DNA of 64,000 nucleotides, taken from positions 62,001 to 126,000 of the forward strand of contig CDROCS010000122.1 of NCBI GenBank assembly GCA_977020255.1, given 5' to 3'. Shown piece by piece: positions 4,571-48,710 of the stretch. Under the pieces are notes generated by a model. That model was given only the letters and a program-made list of their open reading frames with translations, was not told the origin of the DNA and did no database searches. Source of the DNA: Obrimoposthia wandeli. Taxonomy: Eukaryota. How positions within the stretch are numbered: position 1 is the first letter of the stretch; every line of letters begins with the position of its first letter. A program made the position numbers and the translations under genes.

Positions 4571-6832
4571 TTACAATGGCCTAATACTGTCTTCATCCAA
4601 CACTGCGGCAAAGCGCTGGCGGATAAAAGTGACATTAGCATCACTCTCTAAACTCTCTTTTGCTTGACCCAGCTTCTGCTGATAAAGCCCTTCTCGCCAT
4701 TCTAGTGGCGTCTGGCCTTTATCACTCAGCTCAATCTTTAAATCAATATCCGCACTCTGTAGCTCGCCAATTGCTTGCGCCAGCTGCTCTCGAGCTTTCG
4801 GATTATCTAAGTGACCCTGCGATTGGCGCAAAAACAAAGTAACCTGATTGTTATCTTGTTCAAACGCTGAATTTAACGCTAGCTGTTGAACCAACCGTCC
4901 TACATTTAGCTTAGTCACTAAATCGGACCAACTATCCTGATTTGCCGCTTCTTTGACAAGTAGTTTCGCCATTTCAGGGGTTTTTTCATGCTCTAGCGCT
5001 TGCTTTAATTTGCGTGGGGCAACTTCAAGCTTGGCTTCTTCTTCCGGTGCTACCGGCTGCATCGGCCTCCACTGATACTCATCTTTTTTCTCAGGCACAT
5101 TTGCTTGAGTACCATTTGTATGAGTCGCTATCATCGACGCCGGCATCGCACTGTTAGTTGCAGTGTTTCCTGTAGTAGGAACACGCATTCCCGTATGCTT
5201 GCTAGCAATACGGTCTAACACATTCGTTGCGACTTTTTTAGCTGGCGCCGGTTCACCCTTTTTTACAGGTTGCTCTTCATTACCACGTTTTGACTGGCTT
5301 CGTAACTTATTACGCGCAGCCAGTAAACCAGAAGCCGCTGAACGTGGTTGGGCTGGCGGTATATTCTGTGGTGCTTCAGGCTGCTCTGAATGAGGAGCTT
5401 GCTGTTGGTACTGTACAGGTGGCGGCGTCGGCTCTTGTCGAGAAGGAGCCTGTGGCATCGGCACTTGCTGATATTGCTGCTGCTCTGCTGGTACTGTACC
5501 CGCTGATTCCTGAATAGAACTTGGACTAGCGGCTAATTGCTGATCACTATGTTGTGGGGCTACAGCGTGAGGGGCTACAACTTGTGGAGTAGCGGCTTGT
5601 GGCTGCGATCCCATCTGTGCTTTTAATGCTTGAACACGCTGCATACCTTGTTGCGGCGCATTAGGCACTCTTCCAGATTGCATCGTCGGTGCAGCAGTAG
5701 GCTCGCTTGCTGGTACATTAATAGATTGAGGTGTAATGCCACTGCCCGATACCGGTCTGAACGCCAACATGCGCAGCAACACCATTTCTAGCCCTATACG
5801 ACCATCAGGTGCGAACGCTAAATCTTGACGACCTTGCAATGCAATTTGATAACACAGCTGAACATCTTGCGGTGCCATTGCTGAACTCAGCGTAATAATA
5901 CGATCAGCATCTGGGGCACTCATATCTAAGGCTGCCGGTAATGCCTGATGCATGGCAACACGGTGTAACTGTGCGGCTAATTCACGTAGTAAACTATCCC
6001 ATTCCACACCCACATTCGCGAGCTCTTCAAGCCCACCCATCGCGGTATTTGCTTGACCGTTAGAAACAGCCTCTAACAAAAACAATGCTTGATCTGTATT
6101 TAACGTACCCAACATCATTGAAACCGAATCAGCATGAACTTGGCCATTACCCAGCGCTATCGCTTGGTCAGTCAAACTTAATGCATCACGCATACTACCT
6201 TCGGCAGCACGTGATAATAGGCTTAATGCTTTCGGTTCAAAATCAACATTTTCTTGGGTTAAGACCTTTGATAACTGGCTTTGAATCTGATCATTGTCTA
6301 AATGCTTTAGATGAAACTGCAAACAACGAGATAAAATCGTCACTGGCAATTTTTGAGGATCAGTGGTGGCCAGAATAAATTTAACGTATTCCGGTGGCTC
6401 TTCCAGCGTCTTTAATAAGGCGTTAAAACTATGACGAGATAGCATGTGCACTTCATCAATTAAGTACACTTTAAAACGGCCACGTGCAGGCTTATACTGA
6501 ACGTTATCAAGTAACTCACGCGTATCTTCTACTTTTGTTCTTGATGCGGCATCGATCTCTAATAGATCAACAAAACGTCCCTCATCAATTTCTTTACACG
6601 TACCACATTGCCCACAAGGTGTTGCTGTAACACCTTGTTCACAGTTAAGCCCTTTGGCAAAAATTCGTGCAATAGAGGTTTTACCCACACCTCGGGTACC
6701 ACTAAATAAATATGCGTGGTGAAGGCGGTTATGCGTGAGAGCGTTAGACAGCGCAGTCAATACATGTGACTGCCCTACTACATCACTAAATTGATACGGT
6801 CGCCATTTCCGTGCCAGAACCTGATAACTCAT
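4571..6832 (-). CDS. dnaX: DNA polymerase III tau/gamma subunit
   Basis: MSYQVLARKWRP, GTRGVGKT Walker A, DEVHML, SRC motif; long Q/P-rich linker. Confidence 0.99.
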   Translation of the reverse strand: MSYQVLARKWRPYQFSDVVGQSHVLTALSNALTHNRLHHAYLFSGTRGVGKTSIARIFAKGLNCEQGVTATPCGQCGTCKEIDEGRFVDLLEIDAASRTKVEDTRELLDNVQYKPARGRFKVYLIDEVHMLSRHSFNALLKTLEEPPEYVKFILATTDPQKLPVTILSRCLQFHLKHLDNDQIQSQLSKVLTQENVDFEPKALSLLSRAAEGSMRDALSLTDQAIALGNGQVHADSVSMMLGTLNTDQALFLLEAVSNGQANTAMGGLEELANVGVEWDSLLRELAAQLHRVAMHQALPAALDMSAPDADRIITLSSAMAPQDVQLCYQIALQGRQDLAFAPDGRIGLEMVLLRMLAFRPVSGSGITPQSINVPASEPTAAPTMQSGRVPNAPQQGMQRVQALKAQMGSQPQAATPQVVAPHAVAPQHSDQQLAASPSSIQESAGTVPAEQQQYQQVPMPQAPSRQEPTPPPVQYQQQAPHSEQPEAPQNIPPAQPRSAASGLLAARNKLRSQSKRGNEEQPVKKGEPAPAKKVATNVLDRIASKHTGMRVPTTGNTATNSAMPASMIATHTNGTQANVPEKKDEYQWRPMQPVAPEEEAKLEVAPRKLKQALEHEKTPEMAKLLVKEAANQDSWSDLVTKLNVGRLVQQLALNSAFEQDNNQVTLFLRQSQGHLDNPKAREQLAQAIGELQSADIDLKIELSDKGQTPLEWREGLYQQKLGQAKESLESDANVTFIRQRFAAVLDEDSIRPL
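5253..5264 (-). promoter_or_regulatory. Programmed -1 frameshift site producing gamma
   Basis: In-frame A AAA AAG (5264-5258) followed by GGG TGA in the -1 frame (stop 5255-5253), the same arrangement as E. coli dnaX. Confidence 0.8.
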
Positions 6833-9214: not shown

Positions 9215-9865
9215 TTAGTTAAAATCATGCTCTGCAGCCCAGATCTTAAATGCTTTCTTTTCTTTGGCAGATGCCTTGGTATACCACATTTTAAGCTGAG
9301 TTAAAGAATCACCCGTGATTTCTATTTTTCCTGCTGCATCGACCTTCACCGCGACTTGTTCTAAATCAACCGCATAACCTTGCTCAAATACGATGCCATG
9401 CTTACTGTTGTATTTAGCAACTAGCTCTTCCATATTACTGTAAGAACCAAAACCATCACCTTGCAGCTCCACGGTTTTAAGCACTTCTTTTGTGCCATCG
9501 GTATATTCCAGAGCCCAATTTGCACCACGATCAAAGTAAGCGGTGGTTTGTGAAAGTGTCGTCAATGTTGGCAATACAATTTTGGCATTTTTATCTGCGA
9601 CATTCACATCAAACAAGTAAGGGCGTGTAGTGTAAATTGTATTTTTTGAGCCATTTTTCACTTCACCATCAAAGCGAATCACGATTTGGTGTTTACCATC
9701 GGCCAGCTCCACACTTTCAGTGGGTGACCAATAAGACGATTCCACCTTCTTACCATCAACCACTAACAACTCAATATTTTTACTGGTCGACAGGGTTGCA
9801 GCTTGCGCCCCAGCAGTCGCAAATACCATGATTGCCAACGATGTTAAAAGCGCACATTTTTTCAT
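9215..9865 (-). CDS. DUF2057 (YccT-like) exported protein
   Basis: Signal peptide, [10 protein letters not shown]-terminal [18 protein letters not shown]. Confidence 0.8.
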
Positions 9866-11551: not shown

Positions 11552-13630
11552 ATGTTACACAGTCAGATTAAAAGTGATATCAAACAATGCTATGAGAACC
11601 TGGGAAACCAGCTGGATAACTTTATCCCTCGTCGTGCACAGAACTACCTTGTAGCTGAAATTGCTAAAACCCTGGCGGGTGAATATCATCAGAAACACCG
11701 AATGTTGGTGGGTGAAGCAGGTACAGGTATTGGTAAATCATTAGCCTACTTGATTGGAGGGATCCCCTTTGCACTTTTCAATAATAAAAAGTTATTGATT
11801 TCGACCGCAACGGTGGCATTACAAGAACAATTGATTAACAAAGATTTGCCATTGTTTAATCGTATTTACCCAAAAGAATTCAGCTTCATTCTGGCTAAAG
11901 GGCGTCAACGCTATTGCTGCAACCACAAATTGGAAGCCTGTTGCGCCACCGATAACGATCAACAAGTGGCATTATGGGAAGAAAAACCTAAAAAGTCGGA
12001 TTTAGATCTTTTAAAAAGAATGCTTAAAGCCACTCAAGACGGTAAATGGGATGGTGACCGCGACAGTTGGCCGACAACCATTCCAGATCGTGTCTGGCCA
12101 CAAATAATGGCCGATAAACACAGCTGCCATGCTGGTTTGCCCAAGCACCGTAGTTGTCCATTTGCGAAAGCGAGAGAACACTTAGACAAAGCCGATGTCA
12201 TTATTGCTAACCATGCTTTGCTAATGGCTGATATTGAATTAGGGGGGGGGGTGATTTTGCCCGAACCAGAGCAAACAATTTATGTCATCGATGAAGCGCA
12301 CCACCTGCCGAAGGTCGCAAGAGATTTCTCTTCAGCAGCATCCAGCTTAAAAGGCGCGGCAACTTGGTTAGAAAAGCTAAATCAAACCATTGGTAAACTG
12401 GCAGAACTGGCAGATTATAAAAAAGCCGCTCGCTTCCAAGATGCTATTTTAGAAAATATTCAGCACCTTATTCCAACATTACGGCAAGTAGCCAACAATG
12501 TTGATATCGGTATGTTCAGTAAAGACGGTATCTACCGTTTTGAACACGGTGAATTACCAGCATGGTTAGAACAAGAAGCAAAAGGCTGCAAAGATGCCAG
12601 TAAGAAAGCCTTACAATCATTAGGTAAAATACACGACTTAATTTCTGAACGTTTAAAAGATAACGAAATCCAGCAACGTTTAGGTGAACAAGCCCTTGCT
12701 GAATCAGGTGTTTATCTCCAACGTTTAGAAAATTTAGAAAAAGTATGGGCATTAATGGCACAGCCTAAAAAAGATAAAGGTGCCCCACTCGCACGTTGGA
12801 TAGAAAAGAACCCTGATAACGAAGGGGACTATATTATTCAGGTTTCACCACTTGAAGTCGGTTACCGTTTAGATCAGTTATTATGGAGCCGTGCAGCAGG
12901 TGCCATTTTGGTCTCTGCAACGCTGCGCGCTCTAAACCAATTTACTTACTTTTGTCGTCAAGTGGGTATCTATGAAATGGACAGCACGCGCTTTTTAGCC
13001 CTTGCTTCACCGTTTGATTATCAAAATAACGCTCGCTTAGTTATTCCAGCATTATCCCTTGAGCCTCAGGCGGATAAATTTACCGATCTATTAATCAAAA
13101 TATTACCAGAATATTTAGAAGGTGAAACCGCCAGTCTCGTGCTCTTTTCATCCTATTGGCAGATGAATAAAGTTGCCGATGAATTACGCCCACTCGCCAA
13201 GAAAAATAAATGGCAATTATTGGTACAAGGTGAAGAATCACGCCACATAACTCTAAAAAAACATAAAGATAATTGTAAAAACGGTAAACCTAGCATTTTA
13301 TTTGGCACCGGAAGCTTCTCTGAAGGGCTTGATTTGCCAGGCCATTTATTAAAAAACCTGATAATCACAAAAATCCCTTTCGGTGTACCGACCTCTCCGG
13401 TAGAAGAAGCCCATGCGGAATATATTGAAAGCTGTGGTGGTAATCCGTTTATGCAAATTTCAGTGCCTGAAGCCAGTAAAAAACTGATTCAATCTGTAGG
13501 TAGATTACTGCGTAAAGAAGATGACACAGGTCGAGTCGTACTGCTTGATCGTAGAATCATAAACCGTCGTTACGGCAAAGCCTTGTTGGATTCACTACCG
13601 CCATTTAAACGCGTTATAGAATATAATTAA
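11552..13630 (+). CDS. dinG: ATP-dependent DNA helicase DinG
   Basis: GEAGTGIGKS, DEAH, Fe-S Cys residues, SFSEGLD, QSVGRLLR. Confidence 0.97.
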   Translation: MLHSQIKSDIKQCYENLGNQLDNFIPRRAQNYLVAEIAKTLAGEYHQKHRMLVGEAGTGIGKSLAYLIGGIPFALFNNKKLLISTATVALQEQLINKDLPLFNRIYPKEFSFILAKGRQRYCCNHKLEACCATDNDQQVALWEEKPKKSDLDLLKRMLKATQDGKWDGDRDSWPTTIPDRVWPQIMADKHSCHAGLPKHRSCPFAKAREHLDKADVIIANHALLMADIELGGGVILPEPEQTIYVIDEAHHLPKVARDFSSAASSLKGAATWLEKLNQTIGKLAELADYKKAARFQDAILENIQHLIPTLRQVANNVDIGMFSKDGIYRFEHGELPAWLEQEAKGCKDASKKALQSLGKIHDLISERLKDNEIQQRLGEQALAESGVYLQRLENLEKVWALMAQPKKDKGAPLARWIEKNPDNEGDYIIQVSPLEVGYRLDQLLWSRAAGAILVSATLRALNQFTYFCRQVGIYEMDSTRFLALASPFDYQNNARLVIPALSLEPQADKFTDLLIKILPEYLEGETASLVLFSSYWQMNKVADELRPLAKKNKWQLLVQGEESRHITLKKHKDNCKNGKPSILFGTGSFSEGLDLPGHLLKNLIITKIPFGVPTSPVEEAHAEYIESCGGNPFMQISVPEASKKLIQSVGRLLRKEDDTGRVVLLDRRIINRRYGKALLDSLPPFKRVIEYN

Positions 13631-18916: not shown

Positions 18917-20269
18917 ATGCAACCAAGCATACTTTCCCGCGTATTAGCACTAACACTTATGACTGCCACTGTGCAGCCGGTGTTTGCGACTACGGATATA
19001 ACAAATTCAGGGTCGACTAATACCCAAATAAACACATCAATAAATGCGAATACTGAACTCAAACAATTGATCCGTTGGGCTATCGAACACGATGCTGGCA
19101 TTCAGCAAATACATTATCAAGCAGATGCTCTCCAAGATATGGGCGTAGCAACCTCTCAATGGATGGATCCAAAACTCAAAGTGGGTGTTGGTGGTTTACC
19201 AGTCGATAGCTTTGCCTTTGATGAAGATCCCATGACCAATATTTCTGTTGGATTAATGCAGCAGTTTGGCCGCGGTAATACGCTTGGTTTAAAACAGAAG
19301 CAGAGTGATCAACAAGCGAATAGCATTCGCGAGAAAGCCGGTATACGTGATCTCGAATTAGAAAACGCGATTACCACACAATGGAACGAGTTGGTTTTCC
19401 AGCAAAATGTCTATGACTTATTACAGCAAAATCAGGTGCTATTTAGAGAGCTTGAACATTACCTCAGTACTAATTACGGCGTTGGTTCAAATCAAACTCA
19501 AGATATTATTCAAGCCCAACTTCAAATCAGCCTTATTGATGACAAGCTGCAAGCTAATCAACAAATGCAGCAAAAAATCAAAGCTCAGCTATCAGAGTGG
19601 GTTGGCGACAATGCTTTTACCATACAAGCCAATAACTACCCTGATTGGTTTGCACTTAATGGTTATTTCTCGACAAATACAGGGGCCTCTTCATCAACAA
19701 CGCCGGAAGATAATTACCCAGCATTAGTTAACCACCCGTCTATTCGTATGAGCGATTTATTGATTAAAAGCAGTGAAACAGGCATCGATATTGCCAATGA
19801 AGCGTATCTACCTGAGTTTGGTGTTGAAGTCATGTATGGCTATCGACAAGCCAACGGCATGGGTGGGCAACCAGCCTCTGATTTAATGAGCGTCTACCTC
19901 ACCATGGATATCCCGCTATTTACCGAAAAACGCCAAGATAAAAAGTTATCTTCTGCGCAGCATCAACTTGGCGCGGCAAAAGCGCAACGCGATCTTCTTC
20001 TGCGACAAATGAACGCCAAAATAAATGCACTCACCGTTGATCGCTACAACCTAGAACAGCGCATCGAACGCTACCAAGATTCATTGTTAAAACGGGCTAA
20101 AGAAAAAACGCACGCCATTGAACGCGGCTATCAAAACAATACCAGCCAGTTAGATGAATATATTCGTGCCGCTAGTGATGAACTCACATTGGCTATCGAA
20201 CAAGAGCGTCTTCAAGCTGATTTACAAAAAACAAATAGTGGCTTGGCTTACCTGTTAAATAAATTTTAG
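18917..20269 (+). CDS. cusC: CusC/TolC-family outer-membrane factor
   Basis: Signal peptide, OMF heptad repeats, YLPEFGVEVMY; upstream of the MFP and RND genes. Confidence 0.85.
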   Translation: MQPSILSRVLALTLMTATVQPVFATTDITNSGSTNTQINTSINANTELKQLIRWAIEHDAGIQQIHYQADALQDMGVATSQWMDPKLKVGVGGLPVDSFAFDEDPMTNISVGLMQQFGRGNTLGLKQKQSDQQANSIREKAGIRDLELENAITTQWNELVFQQNVYDLLQQNQVLFRELEHYLSTNYGVGSNQTQDIIQAQLQISLIDDKLQANQQMQQKIKAQLSEWVGDNAFTIQANNYPDWFALNGYFSTNTGASSSTTPEDNYPALVNHPSIRMSDLLIKSSETGIDIANEAYLPEFGVEVMYGYRQANGMGGQPASDLMSVYLTMDIPLFTEKRQDKKLSSAQHQLGAAKAQRDLLLRQMNAKINALTVDRYNLEQRIERYQDSLLKRAKEKTHAIERGYQNNTSQLDEYIRAASDELTLAIEQERLQADLQKTNSGLAYLLNKF

Positions 20270-20277
20270 GAATAACA

Positions 20278-21858
20278 ATGAATAAGACATTTTCAGTCGC
20301 AGTCATCGCATTGGCTATTGGCGGTGCGCTTGGCTACTTTGCCGCAACAGCGTTCTCTCAACATAATGATGCTCAAGAGACGGCTACATCCAGTGAAAAA
20401 CAACCCTTGTACTGGGTCGCCCCCATGGACCCTAACTATCAGCGTGACAAACCCGGCAAGTCACCAATGGGAATGGACTTGATCCCATTCTACGAAGAAC
20501 AACAAACCGGAGGGAAGAAAGATCCCGCGGGAACAGTTTATATTTCTCCAGCAGTAGAAAATAACTTAGGGGTGAAAACCACCCACGTCGTTAATGAAAA
20601 ATTAACCCCCAAGATAGACACCGTCGGTTACATCGCTTTTGATGAAAGTCAGTTATGGCAAATTAACAGCCGTGTGAGTGGTTGGGTCCAAAAACTGAAT
20701 ATCAATGCCATTGGCGAAAAAGTACAAAAAGGCGATGTGTTATTTACGCTTTATTCACCTGAATTGGTTCGGGCACAAGAAGAATTGCTGAATGCAAAAC
20801 GCATTGGTAAAGCTGTACTCGTACAGGGCGCAAAAGAACGCCTCGCTTCTTTAGGTGTCGACAACAACCAAATAAATGCCGTATTACGCAACAGAAAATC
20901 AGTTAAGAATATTGCAATCAAAGCCCCTGCCGATGGCATTATTACTAGCCTAAACGTGCGAACTGGTGCTTATTTATCGCCAGCACAAAGCGTGATCAGT
21001 GGTGGCTCATTAGACAATATTTGGGTTGATGCCGAAGTATTTGAACGCCAATCTAACTGGATAAAGTCAGGTACAACAGCGGATATGACGCTTGATGCCT
21101 TACCCGGTAAGCATTGGCAAGGTAAGGTCGATTATGTCTACCCGATACTTGATCCTAATACCCGTACTTTACGTGTACGCCTTAAATTCGCCAACGCCAA
21201 TGGCGTACTAAAACCGAACATGTTTGCCAATATAACCTTGATGCCGCAAAGCAATAACAAGGTATTGATTGTACCTAACCAAGCCGTTATTCGTTCTGCG
21301 GGTATGTCGCGTGTGGTATTGGCGTTAGGGGATGGCAAATTCCGTTCAACGCGCGTTGAAACAGGCCGGGAATCAGGCAACCAAATCGAAATTGTTAACG
21401 GGCTTAATCCAAACGATACCATTGTCACGTCTTCACATTTCTTATTAGATTCGGAATCAAGTTTAAGCGCCGATCTTAGTCGAATAAGTAACCGTAACGA
21501 AACCAAAGCCGCCGTTAGCGCACCAATACACGATATGGCTAGTCATTCGACAGAGCAACCGGCAAAGCCGTCGGCAGACAATTCAGCGTGGACAACGGGT
21601 GTTATTCGCAGCGTGATGCTTGATCATAAAATGCTGACCATCCAACACTCCCCTATTCCAGAGTGGCAATGGCCCGCTATGCAAATGGATTTCATGGTGA
21701 AAGACGATGTTGATATGAAACAGTTTGTGGGTGGTCAAAGCATCCGATTTCTGATCGAAAAAACGGCTAAAGGGCAATATGTTGTCGCAGACGTTGATCA
21801 AGCCAATACCGATAACAATACCAATACCAATAATAACAATGTGGAGGTTGCACAATGA
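20278..21858 (+). CDS. cusB: CusB periplasmic adaptor with C-terminal CusF-like domain
   Basis: YWVAPMDP...PGKSPMGMDL, lipoyl-like motifs, terminal HxxIPEWQWPAMQMDF. Confidence 0.92.
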   Translation: MNKTFSVAVIALAIGGALGYFAATAFSQHNDAQETATSSEKQPLYWVAPMDPNYQRDKPGKSPMGMDLIPFYEEQQTGGKKDPAGTVYISPAVENNLGVKTTHVVNEKLTPKIDTVGYIAFDESQLWQINSRVSGWVQKLNINAIGEKVQKGDVLFTLYSPELVRAQEELLNAKRIGKAVLVQGAKERLASLGVDNNQINAVLRNRKSVKNIAIKAPADGIITSLNVRTGAYLSPAQSVISGGSLDNIWVDAEVFERQSNWIKSGTTADMTLDALPGKHWQGKVDYVYPILDPNTRTLRVRLKFANANGVLKPNMFANITLMPQSNNKVLIVPNQAVIRSAGMSRVVLALGDGKFRSTRVETGRESGNQIEIVNGLNPNDTIVTSSHFLLDSESSLSADLSRISNRNETKAAVSAPIHDMASHSTEQPAKPSADNSAWTTGVIRSVMLDHKMLTIQHSPIPEWQWPAMQMDFMVKDDVDMKQFVGGQSIRFLIEKTAKGQYVVADVDQANTDNNTNTNNNNVEVAQ

Positions 21859-39374: not shown

Positions 39375-40208
39375 TTATTGCATTTTCAGTGGTATATAAC
39401 CCGATGCGCGTACATACTTCGCACCCTGTGGGCTATAAATAAAATCAACAAATGTACGAACTAAGCCTTCCGGTTCACCTTTAGTATTCATAAACAATTT
39501 ACGGACAATAGGATACTCACCAGAAGCACAAGCTTCGTTCGTTGGATGTACTTGATCTAAAGTTGGTGCTTTTACTGTATTGTCGATATAGCCGACACTG
39601 CTGTAACCAATAGCACCGGGATCACGAGCAATGGCAGTTTTCATTGCCCCATTTGATGGAACAACATTCGCATGATTCACCATCGATATGTTCTGCAATA
39701 ATTTAGTGGCGAAAACAGCACGAGTACCACTCGCTTCATCACGCGTAAAAATGTTGATTGAGCGGTCATCCCCACCCAGTTGCTGCCAGTTGTTAATTTT
39801 ACCTGAATAGATATCAATAACTTGCTGGGTTGTTAATGATTGAATTGGGTTGGCTGGATTGATAATAGTTGCAACACCATCAATAGCAAAAGGGAGTGAT
39901 ACTAACCCATAAGCAGCCTCACTGGGCTTTAATGCTCGACCTGTATTCCCTATATCGACTAACCCTTTGGCAACTTGTTGGGCGCCGACCCCTGAACCAC
40001 CACCCGCAATAGTAATACGGATATCGCTATTTGCTTTCATAATCGCTTTGGCTGCTTGTTTCATTACGGGAATATGCGCAGTACCTCCAGCTATATTAAT
40101 CGTGCCAGAAAGCCCTTCAAATTTATCGAGATCTGTTGCTTGGGTCAGTAATGGCACAAAGCACACACCACAAAGAAGTAGTCTAATAACACTGGATTTA
40201 CACCACAT
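39375..40208 (-). CDS. pstS: PstS-like substrate-binding protein
   Basis: Signal peptide, GGGSGVG, RDEASGTR, SNG, IGYSS. Confidence 0.8.
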   Translation of the reverse strand: MWCKSSVIRLLLCGVCFVPLLTQATDLDKFEGLSGTINIAGGTAHIPVMKQAAKAIMKANSDIRITIAGGGSGVGAQQVAKGLVDIGNTGRALKPSEAAYGLVSLPFAIDGVATIINPANPIQSLTTQQVIDIYSGKINNWQQLGGDDRSINIFTRDEASGTRAVFATKLLQNISMVNHANVVPSNGAMKTAIARDPGAIGYSSVGYIDNTVKAPTLDQVHPTNEACASGEYPIVRKLFMNTKGEPEGLVRTFVDFIYSPQGAKYVRASGYIPLKMQ

Positions 40209-43102: not shown

Positions 43103-43387
43103 TTATTCTTTGATTACGCCAGCAACTTTAGTTTGATCCACACCGATGATGCGATTTAACACACCAAGGAATGATGAGGTATCCGAAACCGTCGATTTAA
43201 CCGTAACGATTTCAGCATTGTTGGGTACTAGATCCATTGCTCGCTCTTGAGTATCACCACCAGGGAATTGCAAAAACAGCACATTGACACTTTCTGCATG
43301 CGCATCAAACGTTTTGTCTGTTTGATGAATACCAGAGCAGCCAGACAAACCTAAAGCAATTAGAGACAGTAATAATAATTTTTTCAT
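43103..43387 (-). CDS. Small hypothetical lipoprotein
   Basis: Lipobox LSGC. Confidence 0.75.
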   Translation of the reverse strand: MKKLLLLSLIALGLSGCSGIHQTDKTFDAHAESVNVLFLQFPGGDTQERAMDLVPNNAEIVTVKSTVSDTSSFLGVLNRIIGVDQTKVAGVIKE

Positions 43388-43545
43388 TTTTAATCCATTT
43401 GAAATACAATAAAACGATGTATTATTAAGCCATTAAAAGTAATTAGTTGCAACGTATAAGTTAAAGTTTGATGAAAAAATTTTGGGGAGTTAGAAACAAA
43501 AAAGGCCGCCAGTTGGCAGCCTTTCGAAAAATCGTCGTTAAAATG

Positions 43546-43701
43546 TTATTTTTCGTTTCTACATCCATACTTGTCACAAGTAACTTTTTCTGTTGAGGCT
43601 ACCCAATGCTTTGAACGTACTTTTGTGTTGATGCGACATCCTGTAACTCCACCTTTAATTCCTTTATGTACGATATTTGTTGGGGTGTGTTTTACAGTCA
43701 T
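43546..43701 (-). CDS. 51-aa His/Cys-rich small protein
   Basis: MTVKHTPTNIVHKGIKGGVTGCRINTKVRSKHWVASTEKVTCDKYGCRNEK; AAGGA RBS; terminator-like hairpin at 43495-43524. Confidence 0.75.
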   Translation of the reverse strand: MTVKHTPTNIVHKGIKGGVTGCRINTKVRSKHWVASTEKVTCDKYGCRNEK

Positions 43702-43730
43702 TTTTGAATCCTTTTGGGTGATTAGATAAA

Positions 43731-43857
43731 CGTTATGGATAATGAATATTCGAGGGGAAGCAAGTATCAGATGCAACAGTCATGACTTGATTCATTTAGC
43801 ACTGACAAACTTAAAAAGGTTATTTTCACAGGAGTGTTTTAGCTTGCAGTAAGACAA
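43731..43857 (-). pseudogene. tnsA: tnsA 5' remnant (copy A)
   Basis: KLKHS..NLFKFVSAK/NQVMTV/DTCFPLEYS across an indel; homologous to copy B. Confidence 0.8.
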
Positions 43858-43870
43858 AATAAAGCCGCTA

Positions 43871-43947
43871 ATTTGTTGTTTTACTACAACAAAAATAGCC
43901 TATACAAGGTATTAGAGGATATATGTAGGTTTATGATAAAAACACCA
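43871..43947 (-). mobile_element. Tn7-like right end, copy A (one TnsB-type site deleted)
   Basis: TGGTGTTTTTATCATAAACCTACATAT; 29 bp identical to copy B; tnsA remnant lies inside it. Confidence 0.75.
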
Positions 43948-43951
43948 AACA

Positions 43952-44065
43952 TGTTACCTACGGCATAAACTGACATAATGCCACTAAACTGCCAGCATGT
44001 TAACACAATATCGGCACCATTAGTTGGCATAATGTGAAGCATATCTCAACATAAACTAAGATTAA
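43952..44065 (+). mobile_element. Tn7-like left-end candidate
   Basis: TGTTACCTACGG-CATAAACTGACATAAT, then spaced sites CCATTAGTTGGCATAAT (44017-44033) and CAACATAAACT. Confidence 0.65.
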
Positions 44066-44099
44066 CAACGATAACAGTTACCAGATTTCGACTGGTATT

Positions 44100-44235
44100 C
44101 CACAAATCATCCGCAATTAAATCACTCGCTTTATTGTTTTGGCGATAATGGTGTTGTTTGCTATCTGGAATAACCAATTTGATTAAGATCTCTTAGACAT
44201 CGTTAAATTCGCGACTTTGATCCGCAAAAAAACTT
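44100..44235 (-). pseudogene. Eroded ECF sigma factor (SigZ-like) fragment
   Basis: Frame-hopping peptides FLRIKVAN / DV*EILIK / WLFQIANNTII / RQNNKASDLIADDLW. Confidence 0.55.
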
Positions 44236-44350
44236 CAATCATGTCTTCCTCAAACGGATGTTTCGTTGTTGATATCTTCTTCACCCATTAAGAATATTTG
44301 GTTCTATGATTGATAAGGTTAATGATGAATACATTTAAGAAGGAGATGTC

Positions 44351-45055
44351 ATGTTACATCAATTAGTGCTATTTCTTATGGCTCCAGTATTGTTACCTCA
44401 AGGGATTTATATACGTAAATCAACGCCTAAATTAAAAGAGGCGGCAGGTCCACGTCATGGCATTGAAGGACAAGGTAAGTCTCTTCGTCTACTGATTATT
44501 GGCGATTCTTCTGCGGCAGGGGTTGGCGTTGAACATCAATCAAAGGCATTATCAGGGCAACTTATTAGCGCGCTATGTGATCAGTTTAGAATAGATTGGC
44601 AGTTAATCGCTAAAACGGGAGTTACTACAAAGAAAGTATGGCGAAAGCTTTCAGAACACCCTAAGCAAGATTACGACATTATTATTGTCTCTTTAGGGGT
44701 GAACGATGTGACGTCGCAATTGAGTTCAAGAGAATGGATGAAACAACAAAAACACCTCATTGCTCAGTTACGTGATTATTTTTCTTGCCAACAAATTATT
44801 CTCACCAAGATCCCTCCGATGGATAAGTTTCCTGCGCTTCCCAACCCGCTTCGTTGGTATTTAGGCAGTAAAGCCAAAGCCTTTAATCGAAAGCTTGCAC
44901 TCTGGGTTTCTACTCAAAGTGATTGCGAAATAATTACCATTGAGCATCAATTAGAACCTAATCAAATGGCGAGTGATGGATTCCATCCCGGAGCTGAGAT
45001 CTACCAACACTGGGGAAATACTACAGCTCAAACCATTAAAGCACGCTGGTTATAA
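44351..45055 (+). CDS. SGNH/GDSL hydrolase
   Basis: GDSSAAG, GVND, DGFHP blocks. Confidence 0.92.
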   Translation: MLHQLVLFLMAPVLLPQGIYIRKSTPKLKEAAGPRHGIEGQGKSLRLLIIGDSSAAGVGVEHQSKALSGQLISALCDQFRIDWQLIAKTGVTTKKVWRKLSEHPKQDYDIIIVSLGVNDVTSQLSSREWMKQQKHLIAQLRDYFSCQQIILTKIPPMDKFPALPNPLRWYLGSKAKAFNRKLALWVSTQSDCEIITIEHQLEPNQMASDGFHPGAEIYQHWGNTTAQTIKARWL

Positions 45056-45073
45056 CTATAGGTTTAGGTAACA

Positions 45074-45129
45074 ACAAAAATAGCTTATGCATACTTATAG
45101 CGCCAAGTATGCAGACCTATCACCAACGC
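45074..45129 (-). mobile_element. Tn7-like right end, copy C (truncated)
   Basis: Sites GATAGGTCTGCATAC and TATAAGTATGCATAA 22 bp apart as in copy B; GGTG terminus-like sequence and AACGC flank retained. Confidence 0.7.
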
Positions 45130-45373
45130 AATTTGAACACCTCGTTATATATCTATGTGAAGAGTAATTTCACATAGGTGCTTTAGATTACGTAATTCAA
45201 CACGAATTGAACCCGTAATATCAAGATTTAGAGCTACAAAATCCCACTCAATTGTGACTTTAATTCTCTTCTCTAAAAAGCAAAAAACTCCCCAGCACTA
45301 AGTACCAGAGAGTTTTACTGTAAACCTAATTATTAATCTAGCGACTAACTAACGTGATTAGTTAAACTGGAGA

Positions 45374-46978
45374 TTATTTAACTTGGTTAGTCGATACCTG
45401 AGGTTTATCAACTTCCGTCAATAACCCTTTAAACAGGCTCACACTGCCCAACAGAAGAATAATCGTAAACGGCATTGCTGCAATAATGGTGATTGATTGC
45501 AGAGCTTGAATAGATTGAGTGCCACCAATCCACAACATAACCATTGCGATAGCACCAGAGATAACAGCCCAAACTACTTTCTGCTTAACGGGTACTTCTA
45601 ACTTACCACCCGCAGTCATGCCATCAATAACAATAGAACCCGAATCTAATGTTGTCACAAAGAAAACGATAATCAGTGCTACAGCAATAAAGGATAGAAT
45701 ATCCCCGTACGGGTAAGCATCTAGCATATGGAACAAGCTTAGAGATACATCGGTAATCCCTTGATCTACACCTAATTTCCCAACTTTATCTATTACTTGT
45801 TGAATAGCAACGCCACCGAAGATTGACATCCAAGCCGTTGTTACCATTGTCGGAATAAGCATTACACAAAGAAGGAATTCGCGAACGGTGCGACCTCTAG
45901 ATATACGAGCTACAAACATACCAAAGAAAGGTGCATACGCAACCCACCACGCCCAATAGAACACAGTCCAACCATGCAACCACGTTGTATCATCACGACC
46001 CGAGGTTTGGCTTAACGGAATAATATTTTTCACATAACCCGTTACAGCGGTTACTAAGGAATCCAATACTGTAGTGAAATTCAAAACAGCAATAAGGCCA
46101 AGAAATATAAATGCAATGACCATATTTAGGTTGCTGAGAAACTTAACCCCGCCATCCATACCACGCAGAACAGAAATAATGGCTAAGCCCATAATCAATA
46201 CGATAATGGACTGTTGAAGGTAGATATTATTTTCCATTCCGAAAACATGGCTGATACCACTAGCCGCCTGTGTGCCCCCTAAACCAAGAGAAGTCGCTAG
46301 GCCAAACAAAGTAACTAATACCGTTAAGATATCAATCACATCACCTGTTTTCCCCCAAACTCGATCGCCTAATAATGGGTAAAACACAGAGCGCATTGAG
46401 AGTGGCAACCCTTTATTGTAAACAAAATAGGCAAGGCAAAGTGCTGTCATGCCATAGATAGCCCATGCATGTAAGCCCCAATGGAAGACGGTTGCGCCTA
46501 ATGCCAGTTCACGCCCTGCCTCTGTAAAAGGTTCTACATTAAGCGGAGTTCCAAACCAGTTAGTAAAGAACGCGGTTGGTTCAGCAACACCCCAAAAAAT
46601 AAGTCCAATGCCCATACCTGCAGCGAATAACATTGAAATCCAAGAGGCTTTCGAATAATCAGGAGTCGCTCCTTCCCCGCCTAAGCGAATTTTACCTAAA
46701 GGTGAAAACGCTATAATAATGGCAAAGATTAACAAGATGTTGGCTCCCCACATAAAGAGGAAGTCAAAATTTGATAGCACAGCACCCTTAATGGAATCAA
46801 TAGCTGCTTTTGCATCTACTGGCGGTAATGCGAGAAGGGTGACAATGAAGAGAATAGATAAGCCGACTGAGGCTACGAAAACTGTGTTATGGACATCCAT
46901 GCCCCATTTACTGATGTTATCTTGACCAACTTGATAATCAGTAGAATCGATACTGTACTTTTTTGATTTAAAACCCAT
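45374..46978 (-). CDS. BCCT (betaine/choline/carnitine) transporter
   Basis: LFAAGMGIGL, FHWGLHAWAIY, WTVFYWAWW, FFVTTLDSG. Confidence 0.95.
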   Translation of the reverse strand: MGFKSKKYSIDSTDYQVGQDNISKWGMDVHNTVFVASVGLSILFIVTLLALPPVDAKAAIDSIKGAVLSNFDFLFMWGANILLIFAIIIAFSPLGKIRLGGEGATPDYSKASWISMLFAAGMGIGLIFWGVAEPTAFFTNWFGTPLNVEPFTEAGRELALGATVFHWGLHAWAIYGMTALCLAYFVYNKGLPLSMRSVFYPLLGDRVWGKTGDVIDILTVLVTLFGLATSLGLGGTQAASGISHVFGMENNIYLQQSIIVLIMGLAIISVLRGMDGGVKFLSNLNMVIAFIFLGLIAVLNFTTVLDSLVTAVTGYVKNIIPLSQTSGRDDTTWLHGWTVFYWAWWVAYAPFFGMFVARISRGRTVREFLLCVMLIPTMVTTAWMSIFGGVAIQQVIDKVGKLGVDQGITDVSLSLFHMLDAYPYGDILSFIAVALIIVFFVTTLDSGSIVIDGMTAGGKLEVPVKQKVVWAVISGAIAMVMLWIGGTQSIQALQSITIIAAMPFTIILLLGSVSLFKGLLTEVDKPQVSTNQVK

Positions 46979-47242
46979 AAATTATGATGTTCACATATCC
47001 GAATCAACGAATATAAGGACCAACTCCATATCCAATTACTACTTGATTAGCTAGCCGCACCATATAAACAAACATGATAAAAATCACCGCTGTCGGTGAT
47101 TAATGGCTTTTTGCTCAATCCCAAGCGGCGTATTGTAACACAAAATGGCGATCCTTGATTAGATGTTAGCCAGTTGCTTTAGGGCTTCTCTGTCTGCAAT
47201 CATCACAAATGGCTCAAATCTATCCGCGCTACTGCTATCTAA

Positions 47243-47582
47243 TCAATGCTTGTAACTCAAGCCAGAGTAACGATGAAGAAGTTTGAGGTTATTAAGGACG
47301 GGATTTACCCTGATTTGTTTCTCTGTGATTAATACCAAAGGAATACCCAGTTCGCCTGCCTTTTGTTGCTACGCTGGAAAACGCAATTGAAAATCCTCTT
47401 TCAATTATTTTGAAATCTGGCGTATATGGGCAATAAAAAACGCTATCGATGATGAATATTCGAGGTGAAAGCAAATATCGAACTCAAGATATGACTCAAC
47501 TGTCATGACTTGATTTGCCTTTGTGCTAACAAACTTAAAAAGGCTCTTTGACGTGGGAGTGTTTTAGCTTTCGGCGGTACAT
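47243..47582 (-). pseudogene. tnsA: tnsA pseudogene (copy B), type I-F3 CAST-like
   Basis: MYRRKLKHSHVK/LFKFVSTKANQVMTVESYLEFDICFHLEYS/PYTPDFKI/QKAGELGIPLVLITEKQIRVNPVLNNLKLLHRYSG; frameshifts, a stop, and the EVK catalytic segment is missing. Confidence 0.9.
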
Positions 47583-47595
47583 AATAGACCAGCCC

Positions 47596-47694
47596 ATTTG
47601 TTGTTTTACTACAACAAAAATAGCTTATGCAGACTTATAGTGCAATTTATGCAGGGTAGTAGGGAAGATATGCAGGATTATGGTGAAAACACCA
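47596..47694 (-). mobile_element. Tn7-like right end, copy B, adjacent to ffs
   Basis: Three contiguous sites (47668-47682, 47647-47661, 47625-47639; consensus YATAA-N2-CTG-CATAA) between the ffs 3' end and tnsA; the exact terminus is ambiguous (TGT 47691 or TGG 47694). Confidence 0.8.
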
Positions 47695-47704
47695 AACGCT
47701 AGAT

Positions 47705-47820
47705 GGGTGGAAGCCCCCACCAGCCACATCCCGGCACACACGTCACCTGCTGCGGTTGCTCCCTTCCGGGTCTGGCCGAGTTCACAGGTTAGTGTTGCGG
47801 GAGGACCAATGGGGGCCTCC
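47705..47820 (-). ncRNA. ffs: 4.5S SRP RNA
   Basis: GGAGGCCCCC...CCGGAAGGGAGCA...GTGTGCCGGGATGTGGCTGGTGGGGGCTTCC; GGAA tetraloop, paired ends; ybaZ-ybaY-tesB synteny. Confidence 0.97.
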
Positions 47821-47978: not shown

Positions 47979-48710
47979 CTAGACTTCTTCAGGGTCTTCC
48001 AGTAGATATTCACCTAATAATGCCCCACCCAGAATCAATAGCCATGCAACTAAAACAGGGTTGGGCACGTCAAACTGCGGCACAATCACTAATGTAGCAA
48101 ACCCTACTGCGGGTAATACCCAAGCCAAGCGAGGCACCCAATCTCCGACCTTGACCTTTTTCATGCCCTGCAGTGCAGCAATTACCCCTGTGATACACAA
48201 GGCAACTAACGCTGCATGCTGTAATCCCCCAACCCATAACGGCACCACTAAAAATAACGGCCACCACGTATTACCTTCTACTGTGCGCCAAGATCGAGCT
48301 GCATACCAAATAATACATACCGCTATAATTTGCACAACGGTGGCACCAACACTACCGGGTAACTTCCCTTCACCTTGCAAAGCCATTAACCCAACGTCCA
48401 TTGCAAGAACAACAGAAACAAGTAATGCGCCTAATTGCCAATTACTTTTAGGCGAGAAAGTCACAGAAAAAATAGGTAACATCATAAAAAGGCTAATTGA
48501 TAATGCTAAAGATTGCCCCGGTAATACGGCACCAAAAGAGGCTAAGCCTATCAATAAAAGCCAAGCAGCGGCTCCACCTTGAGGGAGTAACCACAGTGCA
48601 GGAATCGCTAAAGCGAGTGCGGGAACATCTCCTTGACTATAACCTAGGGCAGTAACTCCTAATACAGTCAAAGCTATGCTGACAAAAATGAGTAACGCGG
48701 CATACAACAT
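47979..48710 (-). CDS. Hypothetical polytopic membrane protein
   Basis: About 8-9 hydrophobic segments, acidic tail. Confidence 0.8.
   Translation of the reverse strand: MLYAALLIFVSIALTVLGVTALGYSQGDVPALALAIPALWLLPQGGAAAWLLLIGLASFGAVLPGQSLALSISLFMMLPIFSVTFSPKSNWQLGALLVSVVLAMDVGLMALQGEGKLPGSVGATVVQIIAVCIIWYAARSWRTVEGNTWWPLFLVVPLWVGGLQHAALVALCITGVIAALQGMKKVKVGDWVPRLAWVLPAVGFATLVIVPQFDVPNPVLVAWLLILGGALLGEYLLEDPEEV

Follow-up and report, generated by a model that had tools for sequence, protein, structure and literature searches.

The DNA examined is a 64-kb stretch (contig CDROCS010000122.1, positions 62,001 to 126,000), hereafter called the window. It was analysed for remains of Tn7-like elements belonging to the CRISPR-associated transposons (CASTs) of type I-F3, next to ffs, the gene of the bacterial small signal recognition particle (SRP) RNA, which was the sole RNA gene recovered by an Rfam scan of the window. 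Downstream of ffs, transposon right ends (R1, R2 and R3), a left end, tnsA pseudogenes and two intact genes were located. Two element lineages, designated A and B, were distinguished among these relics; loci used for comparison carry L numbers. In order from ffs, the features are:

47715-47811, minus strand: ffs, the attachment-site gene (Rfam RF00169, 71.1 bits, full model 1-97)
47774-47775, minus strand: CC, protospacer-adjacent motif (PAM) of the homing protospacer, inside ffs
47742-47773, minus strand: homing protospacer inside ffs (match to the terminal spacer of L001)
47695-47699, minus strand: target-site duplication GCGTT (AACGC on the plus strand) on the ffs side of R1 (empty-site comparison)
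47583-47694, minus strand: right end R1, lineage A, three contiguous TnsB-type sites plus palindrome (nhmmer E 1.1e-27)
47259-47582, minus strand: tnsA pseudogene 1, frameshifted, chimera (tblastn E 8e-30 to 1e-39)
45374-46978, minus strand: intact gene of a betaine/choline/carnitine-type (BCCT) transporter, 534 aa (Pfam BCCT E 1.6e-161)
45125-45129, minus strand: second GCGTT copy, on the ffs side of R2 (direct reading of the sequence)
45071-45124, minus strand: right end R2, eroded, A-like (nhmmer E 1.3e-7)
44351-45055, plus strand: intact gene of a GDSL/SGNH hydrolase, 234 aa (Pfam Lipase_GDSL_2 E 1.6e-17)
43952-44054, plus strand: left end, terminus TGTT plus three spaced sites of the ...CATAA type (nhmmer E 3.9e-18)
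43865-43947, minus strand: right end R3, with a 22-bp internal deletion (nhmmer E 2.6e-8)
43728-43857, minus strand: tnsA pseudogene 3, a 5' remnant that ends at about 43728 (blastn and tblastn)

A right-end profile was built from eight elements of other species (L006-L011, L017 and L024), from the terminus to the tnsA start and with no sequence from the window, and was searched with nhmmer across all 64 kb. Its matches on the minus strand, at 47580-47692 (E 1.1e-27), 43865-43937 (E 2.6e-8) and 45071-45114 (E 1.3e-7), fell on the three end copies that a sequence-only reading had proposed downstream of ffs. The next match (E 0.029) fell on the left end, whose TnsB-type sites are inverted, and the rest had E values of 0.19 or worse. 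The three copies were also recovered by repeat finding and alignment. A matrix of mixed 22-bp sites had given many background matches of similar score and was replaced by the whole-end profiles.

The sites of R1, for which a spacing of about 21-22 bp had been proposed, were confirmed as three contiguous sites of 22 bp each (47625-47646, 47647-47668 and 47669-47690), every one ending in CTGCATA(A). They are followed inwards by the palindrome TTGTAGTAAAACAACAA at 47597-47618 and by the tnsA start codon at 47582. The R1 terminus at 47694 reads TGGTGTTTT, where relatives have TGTAGTTTG; the orthologue of R1 in strain 3TCK still begins with TGTAGTTTG. The unusual TGGTG terminus (TGG, not TGT) is shared by R1, R2 and R3. 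R2 keeps its inner site in full and a shorter form of its outer site, and has lost both the middle site and the first T of the terminus. R2 is 89% identical to R1 over 44 nt and differs from the lineage-B end that precedes the same hydrolase (lipase) gene in 3TCK and L093. R3 is common to L087, L093 and L099-type strains and probably represents the oldest layer.

Two of the right ends, R1 and R3, have a tnsA pseudogene behind them. In pseudogene 1, the reading frame shifts after about codon 13, and two stretches are deleted internally; one of these deletions takes out the stretch with the conserved VEVK motif. Searches by tblastn with TnsA of an intact plasmid CAST gave E 8e-30 at 47258-47548, and closer chromosomal TnsA relatives gave E 1e-39, in agreement with the deleted tnsA that had been read behind the first end. 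The homology stops near residue 138 (about 47259); beyond this point identity is at random level, and the earlier extension of tnsA to about 47100 was abandoned. A 52-residue piece (47408-47563) matches annotated TnsA on eight Vibrionaceae/Aeromonas plasmids (best E 6e-11). At the protein level, the tnsA pieces of the window are 58-66% identical to the Photobacterium toruni plasmid CAST and 80-92% identical to the Photobacterium chromosomal elements L007-L011, L017 (P. ganghwense), L024 and L008 (P. galatheae). R1 together with the 5' part of tnsA has about 80% DNA identity over 288 bp to L011, L017, L007 and L024, and blastn of the tnsA relic against plasmids gave no match. Because the pieces are too short and broken, they were missed by Pfam alone, and the translated searches were needed to establish TnsA similarity. 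In pseudogene 3, the start codon ATG has become TTG and an internal deletion is present. Pseudogene 3 and R3 together are 72% identical to L017, L024 and L007 over 181-194 bp (blastn E 1e-22 to 5e-20), and tblastn gave E 8e-7, which bears out the tnsA 5' remnant proposed next to the end at 43871-43947. A longer tnsA stub is kept at R3 in L093 (residues 1-58, 79-81% identical to lineage A).

The two parts of pseudogene 1 have different affiliations. The segment 47427-47582 is 87-93% identical to L089 (lineage A) and 64% identical to L008 (lineage B), whereas the segment 47259-47426 is 83-93% identical to L008, 97-100% identical to L086 and 49-72% identical to L089. Judged by these identities, pseudogene 1 is a chimera of two element lineages; its junction, 47427, is also the point at which the homology between the window and 3TCK ends. 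In the simplest reading, a lineage-A element landed ahead of a BCCT-bearing lineage-B element, and the tandem tnsA genes recombined with deletion of everything between them; the same tnsA fusion would have occurred in L087 at another crossover point. The chimera may also have formed through replacement by recombination with another strain.

The homing protospacer was located through the P. toruni CAST (L001), which has a two-spacer array whose last spacer, with atypical repeats around it, matches ffs. This terminal spacer (L001 25790-25821) differs from 47742-47773 of the window by 10 mismatches, four of them at every-sixth positions. Spacers matching ffs with 7-8 mismatches were also found in L022 and L023, downstream of cas6. 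A terminal atypical spacer with mismatches that is aimed at ffs has been described for I-F3b CASTs (Petassi et al. 2020, bioRxiv 10.1101/2020.07.02.184150). The element begins 47 bp beyond the end of the protospacer in the window and 46-48 bp beyond it in relatives; the right end is the ffs-proximal end in the window. A further match to the L001 spacer, at 39396-39427 (minus strand, 22/32 positions), has the same mismatch count as the true target and no CC PAM, and is most likely due to chance (expected about 0.03 per window).

The target-site duplication is 5 bp long. GCGTT is single in the empty site of P. swingsii and repeated at R1 and R2, and it also separates left and right ends at the junctions in 3TCK and L011; beside R3 the duplication is degenerate, with TGTT only (43948-43951). 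Of the att-like bases CCAAAC/AACGC noted earlier behind each copy, AACGC thus corresponds to the duplication at R1 and R2, whereas CCA belongs to the element and R3 does not retain the full motif. A terminus at TGT (47691) with a duplication TTTGG was considered and dropped; relatives and the empty site place the terminus at 47694 and the duplication at GCGTT.

For the comparison of strains, the contexts of the ffs-adjacent VP0952-family protein and its relatives were compared with the window. The gene in question (47979-48710, minus strand) encodes a VP0952 family biofilm-associated membrane protein (NCBIfam, 340 bits), and its arrangement ahead of ffs is conserved across Photobacterium. Since the protein is 96% identical to that of Photobacterium profundum, the window was placed in the P. 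profundum group. The empty site was found in P. swingsii (L094-L096), where ...CATCTAGCGTT is followed by unrelated DNA. The homology to the window stops at the element terminus, with divergence exactly after GCGTT, and neither a transposon end nor tnsA was detected in the 10 kb downstream of ffs in P. swingsii. The earlier proposal that the relics were inserted at this point is upheld by this comparison.

A left-end profile, built from L011, L089 and L093 only, gave one significant match in the 64 kb, at 43952-44054. This left end, which the sequence-only reading did not list, lies directly against R3 and has the opposite orientation to the right ends. Possible left-end remnants beside R2 (45130-45180) and of the oldest layer (about 43437-43470) were suggested by alignment by eye only; profile searches found nothing at either place, and neither is claimed.

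Sister strains carry different selections of the layers. In L093, a lineage-B right end with GTCATAA-type sites is followed, from ffs, by the hydrolase gene, a LamB-LacI-PTS-PfkB-GH32 sucrose cluster, a left end, and R3 with its longer tnsA stub; no BCCT layer is present. In strain 3TCK and its kin (L089, L090 and L092), the first right end is of lineage A and retains a regular TGT terminus; it is followed by tnsA residues 1-109 and an RND pump with TetR, and further on by a left end, GCGTT, a lineage-B right end and then the hydrolase gene. In L086, a lineage-B right end and a lineage-B tnsA relic stand before the BCCT gene, which is followed by GCGTT and R2. L087 resembles the window, but its A/B crossover and its deletion differ, and it retains a segment that is lost from the window. 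One strain, represented by L091 and L099, carries an intact CAST of a third lineage adjoining ffs (tnsA, tnsB, tnsC, xre, tniQ and cas8/5), the TnsA of which is 33-36% identical to those of lineages A and B. Further downstream, right and left ends alternate, three of the former and four of the latter. L091 and L099 are the two fetched stretches, about 17 kb apart, that the comparison covers. Within L099 (17075-19143), a 2.07-kb unit with a full left end, a full lineage-A right end and a single 391-aa gene of no Pfam family was observed, followed by yet another left end at 19148; this unit could be a non-autonomous mini element or a product of in-place deletion.

Stacking was also seen in other genomes. 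In L011 (uncultured Photobacterium), a left end, GCGTT and a second right end occur 9.9 kb after the first right end. Pseudoalteromonas holothuriae (L054 and L067, one contig) has two tandem CASTs at ffs with identical right ends and a left-end/TTTTT/right-end junction; target immunity evidently did not stop the second, near-identical insertion. Two further arrangements at ffs were recorded. In Marinobacter nauticus (L013), two ffs-like copies (4667-4754 and 9774-9861) lie 5 kb apart, the second directly before a CAST, and it seems that something else inserted at, or duplicated, ffs. In Photobacterium sagamiensis (L024, 1896-1938), only the 3' 43 nt of ffs precede the right end and tnsA; unrelated DNA stands in place of the 5' part of ffs, and tnsA is followed by neither tnsB nor tnsC.

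The element family was characterised by a TnsA-protein alignment scan with one genome per species, which yielded 80 genomic loci. In 50 of the 80, as in the window, ffs is co-oriented with tnsA and ends about 130 bp upstream of it. Within the fetched 10 kb, tniQ and cas genes were found in about 17 of the 80, among them L007, L009 and L010, which are the Photobacterium elements closest to the window. All four plasmid relatives that were opened are type I-F3 CASTs; three have the full set of tnsA, tnsB, tnsC, xre, tniQ, a cas8/5 fusion, cas7 and cas6, and the fetched stretch of the fourth (L005) ends at csy3. The nearest intact relatives are thus I-F3 CASTs, as had been supposed. A lone unannotated tnsA-like stretch with 59% identity at about 12004 of L002 (Photobacterium sp. 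DA100, a 2.1-Mb replicon), with no tnsB, tnsC, cas genes or ffs nearby, is probably another relic at a different site. In the plasmid CAST of Aeromonas caviae (L003), a spacer has a perfect 32-nt match 161 bp upstream of the element's own tnsA (11776-11807 and 21623-21654); this is a clean example of an insertion made by the plasmid-targeting pathway.

The loss of tnsBC, tniQ, cas genes and array, as postulated before, was borne out in the window: tblastn with the six proteins of an intact relative found no tnsB, tnsC, tniQ, cas8/5, cas7 or cas6 in the 64 kb (best E 0.69), no I-F repeat core was found in the window, and the Rfam scan returned no CRISPR family. Of the I-F3b features, tnsA as the first gene inside the right end, the end architecture (with TGG at the right ends where the family has TGT), the set distance from a protospacer with CC PAM (about 47-50 bp in the family), and the 5-bp duplication are present; the tnsB-tnsC-tniQ-cas set and an array with an ffs-matching last spacer are missing. 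Because the tnsB-tnsC-tniQ-cas set is missing, the copies are regarded as relics and not as a working member of I-F3b.

On the directly observed homologies, geometry, empty site, strain differences and chimera, the window very probably contains type I-F3b CASTs stacked as fossils at the point downstream of ffs to which they home. At each arrival, a terminal atypical CRISPR RNA and TniQ-Cascade would have bound the ffs protospacer with its CC PAM, and TnsC would have positioned TnsAB, so that insertion occurred 47 bp beyond the protospacer, with the right end and tnsA facing ffs and GCGTT duplicated. Since the protospacer survives insertion, later arrivals would enter at the same point and push earlier ones away from ffs. 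The elements would then have degenerated where they stood, through deletions, frameshifts and recombination of homologous parts lying in tandem, with loss of tnsB, tnsC, tniQ, cas genes and arrays. Counted from ffs, layer 1 would comprise R1 and the tnsA 5' part (lineage A), layer 2 the tnsA 3' part and the BCCT transporter gene (lineage B), and layer 3 the eroded, A-like right end R2. Layer 4, the hydrolase gene with the left end, would be the remnant of a lineage-B element whose own right end and sucrose cluster are kept in sister strains, and layer 5, R3 with its tnsA stub, would be the oldest. R2 is A-like and is not the lineage-B end of the hydrolase layer, which makes a further element probable.

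The order and number of these events, and the RNA-guided step for the dead copies, are what we infer from this arrangement and from relatives. At least three insertions had been proposed earlier. Repeated insertion is supported by the three right ends, of which two have a duplication to themselves, and by strains with partial layers; the figure itself is an undercount, since the chimera and the strains suggest about five contributing insertions (the A, the B, R2's, the hydrolase and the R3 element). With the R termini altered and every transposase and targeting gene lost, nothing in the window is expected to transpose by itself. Both the protospacer in ffs and its PAM are preserved, and the site should therefore still be open to new I-F3b arrivals, as in the sister strain with a live CAST.

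Several observations weigh against this interpretation. No CRISPR/Cas component survives in the window, and RNA guidance of these copies is therefore deduced from relatives. The nearest full-length relative of lineage B (L008) shows tnsABC only within the fetched 10 kb, and no cas gene was seen there. The spacer match with 10 mismatches is weak alone, given the equally good chance match at 39396-39427, and as it is not unique, the homing argument rests on position, PAM and distance. The junction at the left end is TGTT, not GCGTT. No further left end was found at 45130-45400 or 43380-43740 by profile searches confined to those stretches; with only one recognisable left end, the left boundary of two layers could not be demonstrated. 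The far (left) border of the island was not found by synteny with P. swingsii and P. jeanii, since their genes downstream of ffs are entirely different and none of them occurs in the window.

As an alternative, a single non-autonomous composite mini-transposon (47694 to 43952) with the BCCT and hydrolase genes could have been mobilised in trans beside one older relic. R1 and the sole recognisable left end are correctly inverted for such an element, with GCGTT next to R1 and TGTT next to the left end. These flanking duplications are, however, unequal, the R1 terminus is TGG and not TGT, and the internal right end R2 has a GCGTT copy of its own. Moreover, the two halves occur separately (the hydrolase gene without BCCT in L093, BCCT behind a lineage-B end in L086), the equivalent position in 3TCK is taken by other cargo and a complete junction of left and right end, and the tnsA relic is a two-lineage chimera. 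This explanation is considered very unlikely.

Even less probable is an origin from Tn7-like elements that were not CRISPR-associated and reached ffs via a DNA-binding TniQ/TnsD protein. The absence of cas genes and repeats from the window would fit such elements, as would the many fetched relatives that show no tniQ or cas genes within 10 kb. Yet the closest relatives with enough sequence (L006, L007, L009 and L010) carry tniQ, cas8/5, cas7 and cas6, the third and more distant lineage in L091 has tniQ and cas8/5 by ffs, relatives hold ffs-matching terminal spacers, and the literature assigns the ffs site to I-F3b. Local segmental duplication or rearrangement of one inserted element, suggested by the 89% identity of R1 and R2 over 44 nt and by the common TGGTG terminus, is just as improbable, as the divergence of R1 from R3 (about 18-20%) exceeds that of the flanking DNA between strains (5-8%), the layers occur independently in different strains, and the left-end/duplication/right-end junctions are exactly those predicted by insertion at one fixed point.

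Under the preferred interpretation as a stack of I-F3b CASTs, the genes of the BCCT osmolyte transporter and the GDSL hydrolase reached the chromosome as transposon cargo; most likely, they are now ordinary fixed host genes. The transporter scored 433 bits, above the cut-off, with the NCBIfam BCCT subfamily model. Its gene lies behind the lineage-B right end and tnsA relic in L086, and is absent from L093 and 3TCK. The hydrolase gene is part of a larger element with the sucrose cluster in L093 and 3TCK. Directly after the truncated oldest tnsA relic, a 51-aa open reading frame (43546-43701, minus strand; MTVKHTPTNIV...) without a Pfam or NCBIfam family was noted. It is conserved together with the neighbouring gene of a 94-aa lipoprotein in sister strains L093 and L098-L101; in L093, both genes follow the R3 stub as in the window.

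Homing of I-F3b CASTs to ffs is established (Petassi et al. 2020). In such elements, e.g. that of Aeromonas salmonicida S44, the right end and tnsA face ffs as in the window, and three contiguous TnsB-type sites, the 5-bp duplication and TnsA homology are shared; the window differs in that only ends, tnsA pseudogenes and cargo are present and several elements are piled up and partly fused. The intact ffs CASTs of P. chitinilyticum (L009), P. proteolyticum (L010), Photobacterium sp. Alg240-V54 (L006) and L091 agree with the window in genus, site and junction geometry, but keep tnsABC and tniQ-cas, whereas the window copies are dead. Tn6677 of Vibrio cholerae, the reference RNA-guided Tn7-like element, integrates at a fixed distance downstream of its target. 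It resembles the window in the overall system and in end architecture, but belongs to a different branch (I-F3a) and homes to guaC. Islands at attTn7/glmS have reportedly been formed by successive Tn7-like insertions. In Acinetobacter baumannii, the Tn6022/AbaR islands and nrdB relics also arose from successive Tn7-like insertions (PMC11014353) and resemble the window in that one site was reused, tns genes were lost, recombination took place, and relic ends and cargo stayed behind. At both of these kinds of island, the site is picked by a TnsD-type protein, whereas for the I-F3b elements of the window a guide RNA is presumed from relatives. In the literature searched, no account was found that treats the P. 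profundum ffs locus as a stack of CASTs. The window is a new, unusually well-resolved example of a known process and reveals no new system or mechanism.

A broader and rather unlikely proposal is that the ffs site of the P. profundum group acts as a standing cargo-exchange platform. CAST lineages would keep arriving where ends are already resident, neighbours would be fused by recombination of tandem tnsA genes and ends, and cargo (BCCT, RND efflux, sucrose use, hydrolase) would be immobilised and shuffled; retained right ends with the TGG terminus would also serve as immunity decoys against cognate elements. If this were true, the decoy right ends would explain the apparent A/B alternation of the layers. 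Alternation through lineage-specific target immunity had also been considered; it was weakened by the likeness of the A and B left ends, and further by the tandem CASTs of P. holothuriae with identical right ends.

The finding accounts for a previously un-annotated 4-kb stretch and provides a natural multi-layer record at a CAST homing site. Within the same species, the record ranges from a strain without the BCCT layer to a strain with an intact ffs CAST; the empty site comes from another species, P. swingsii. With tandem and even identical-end CASTs at ffs, it bears on the leakiness of target immunity in nature and on how dead elements collapse by recombination.

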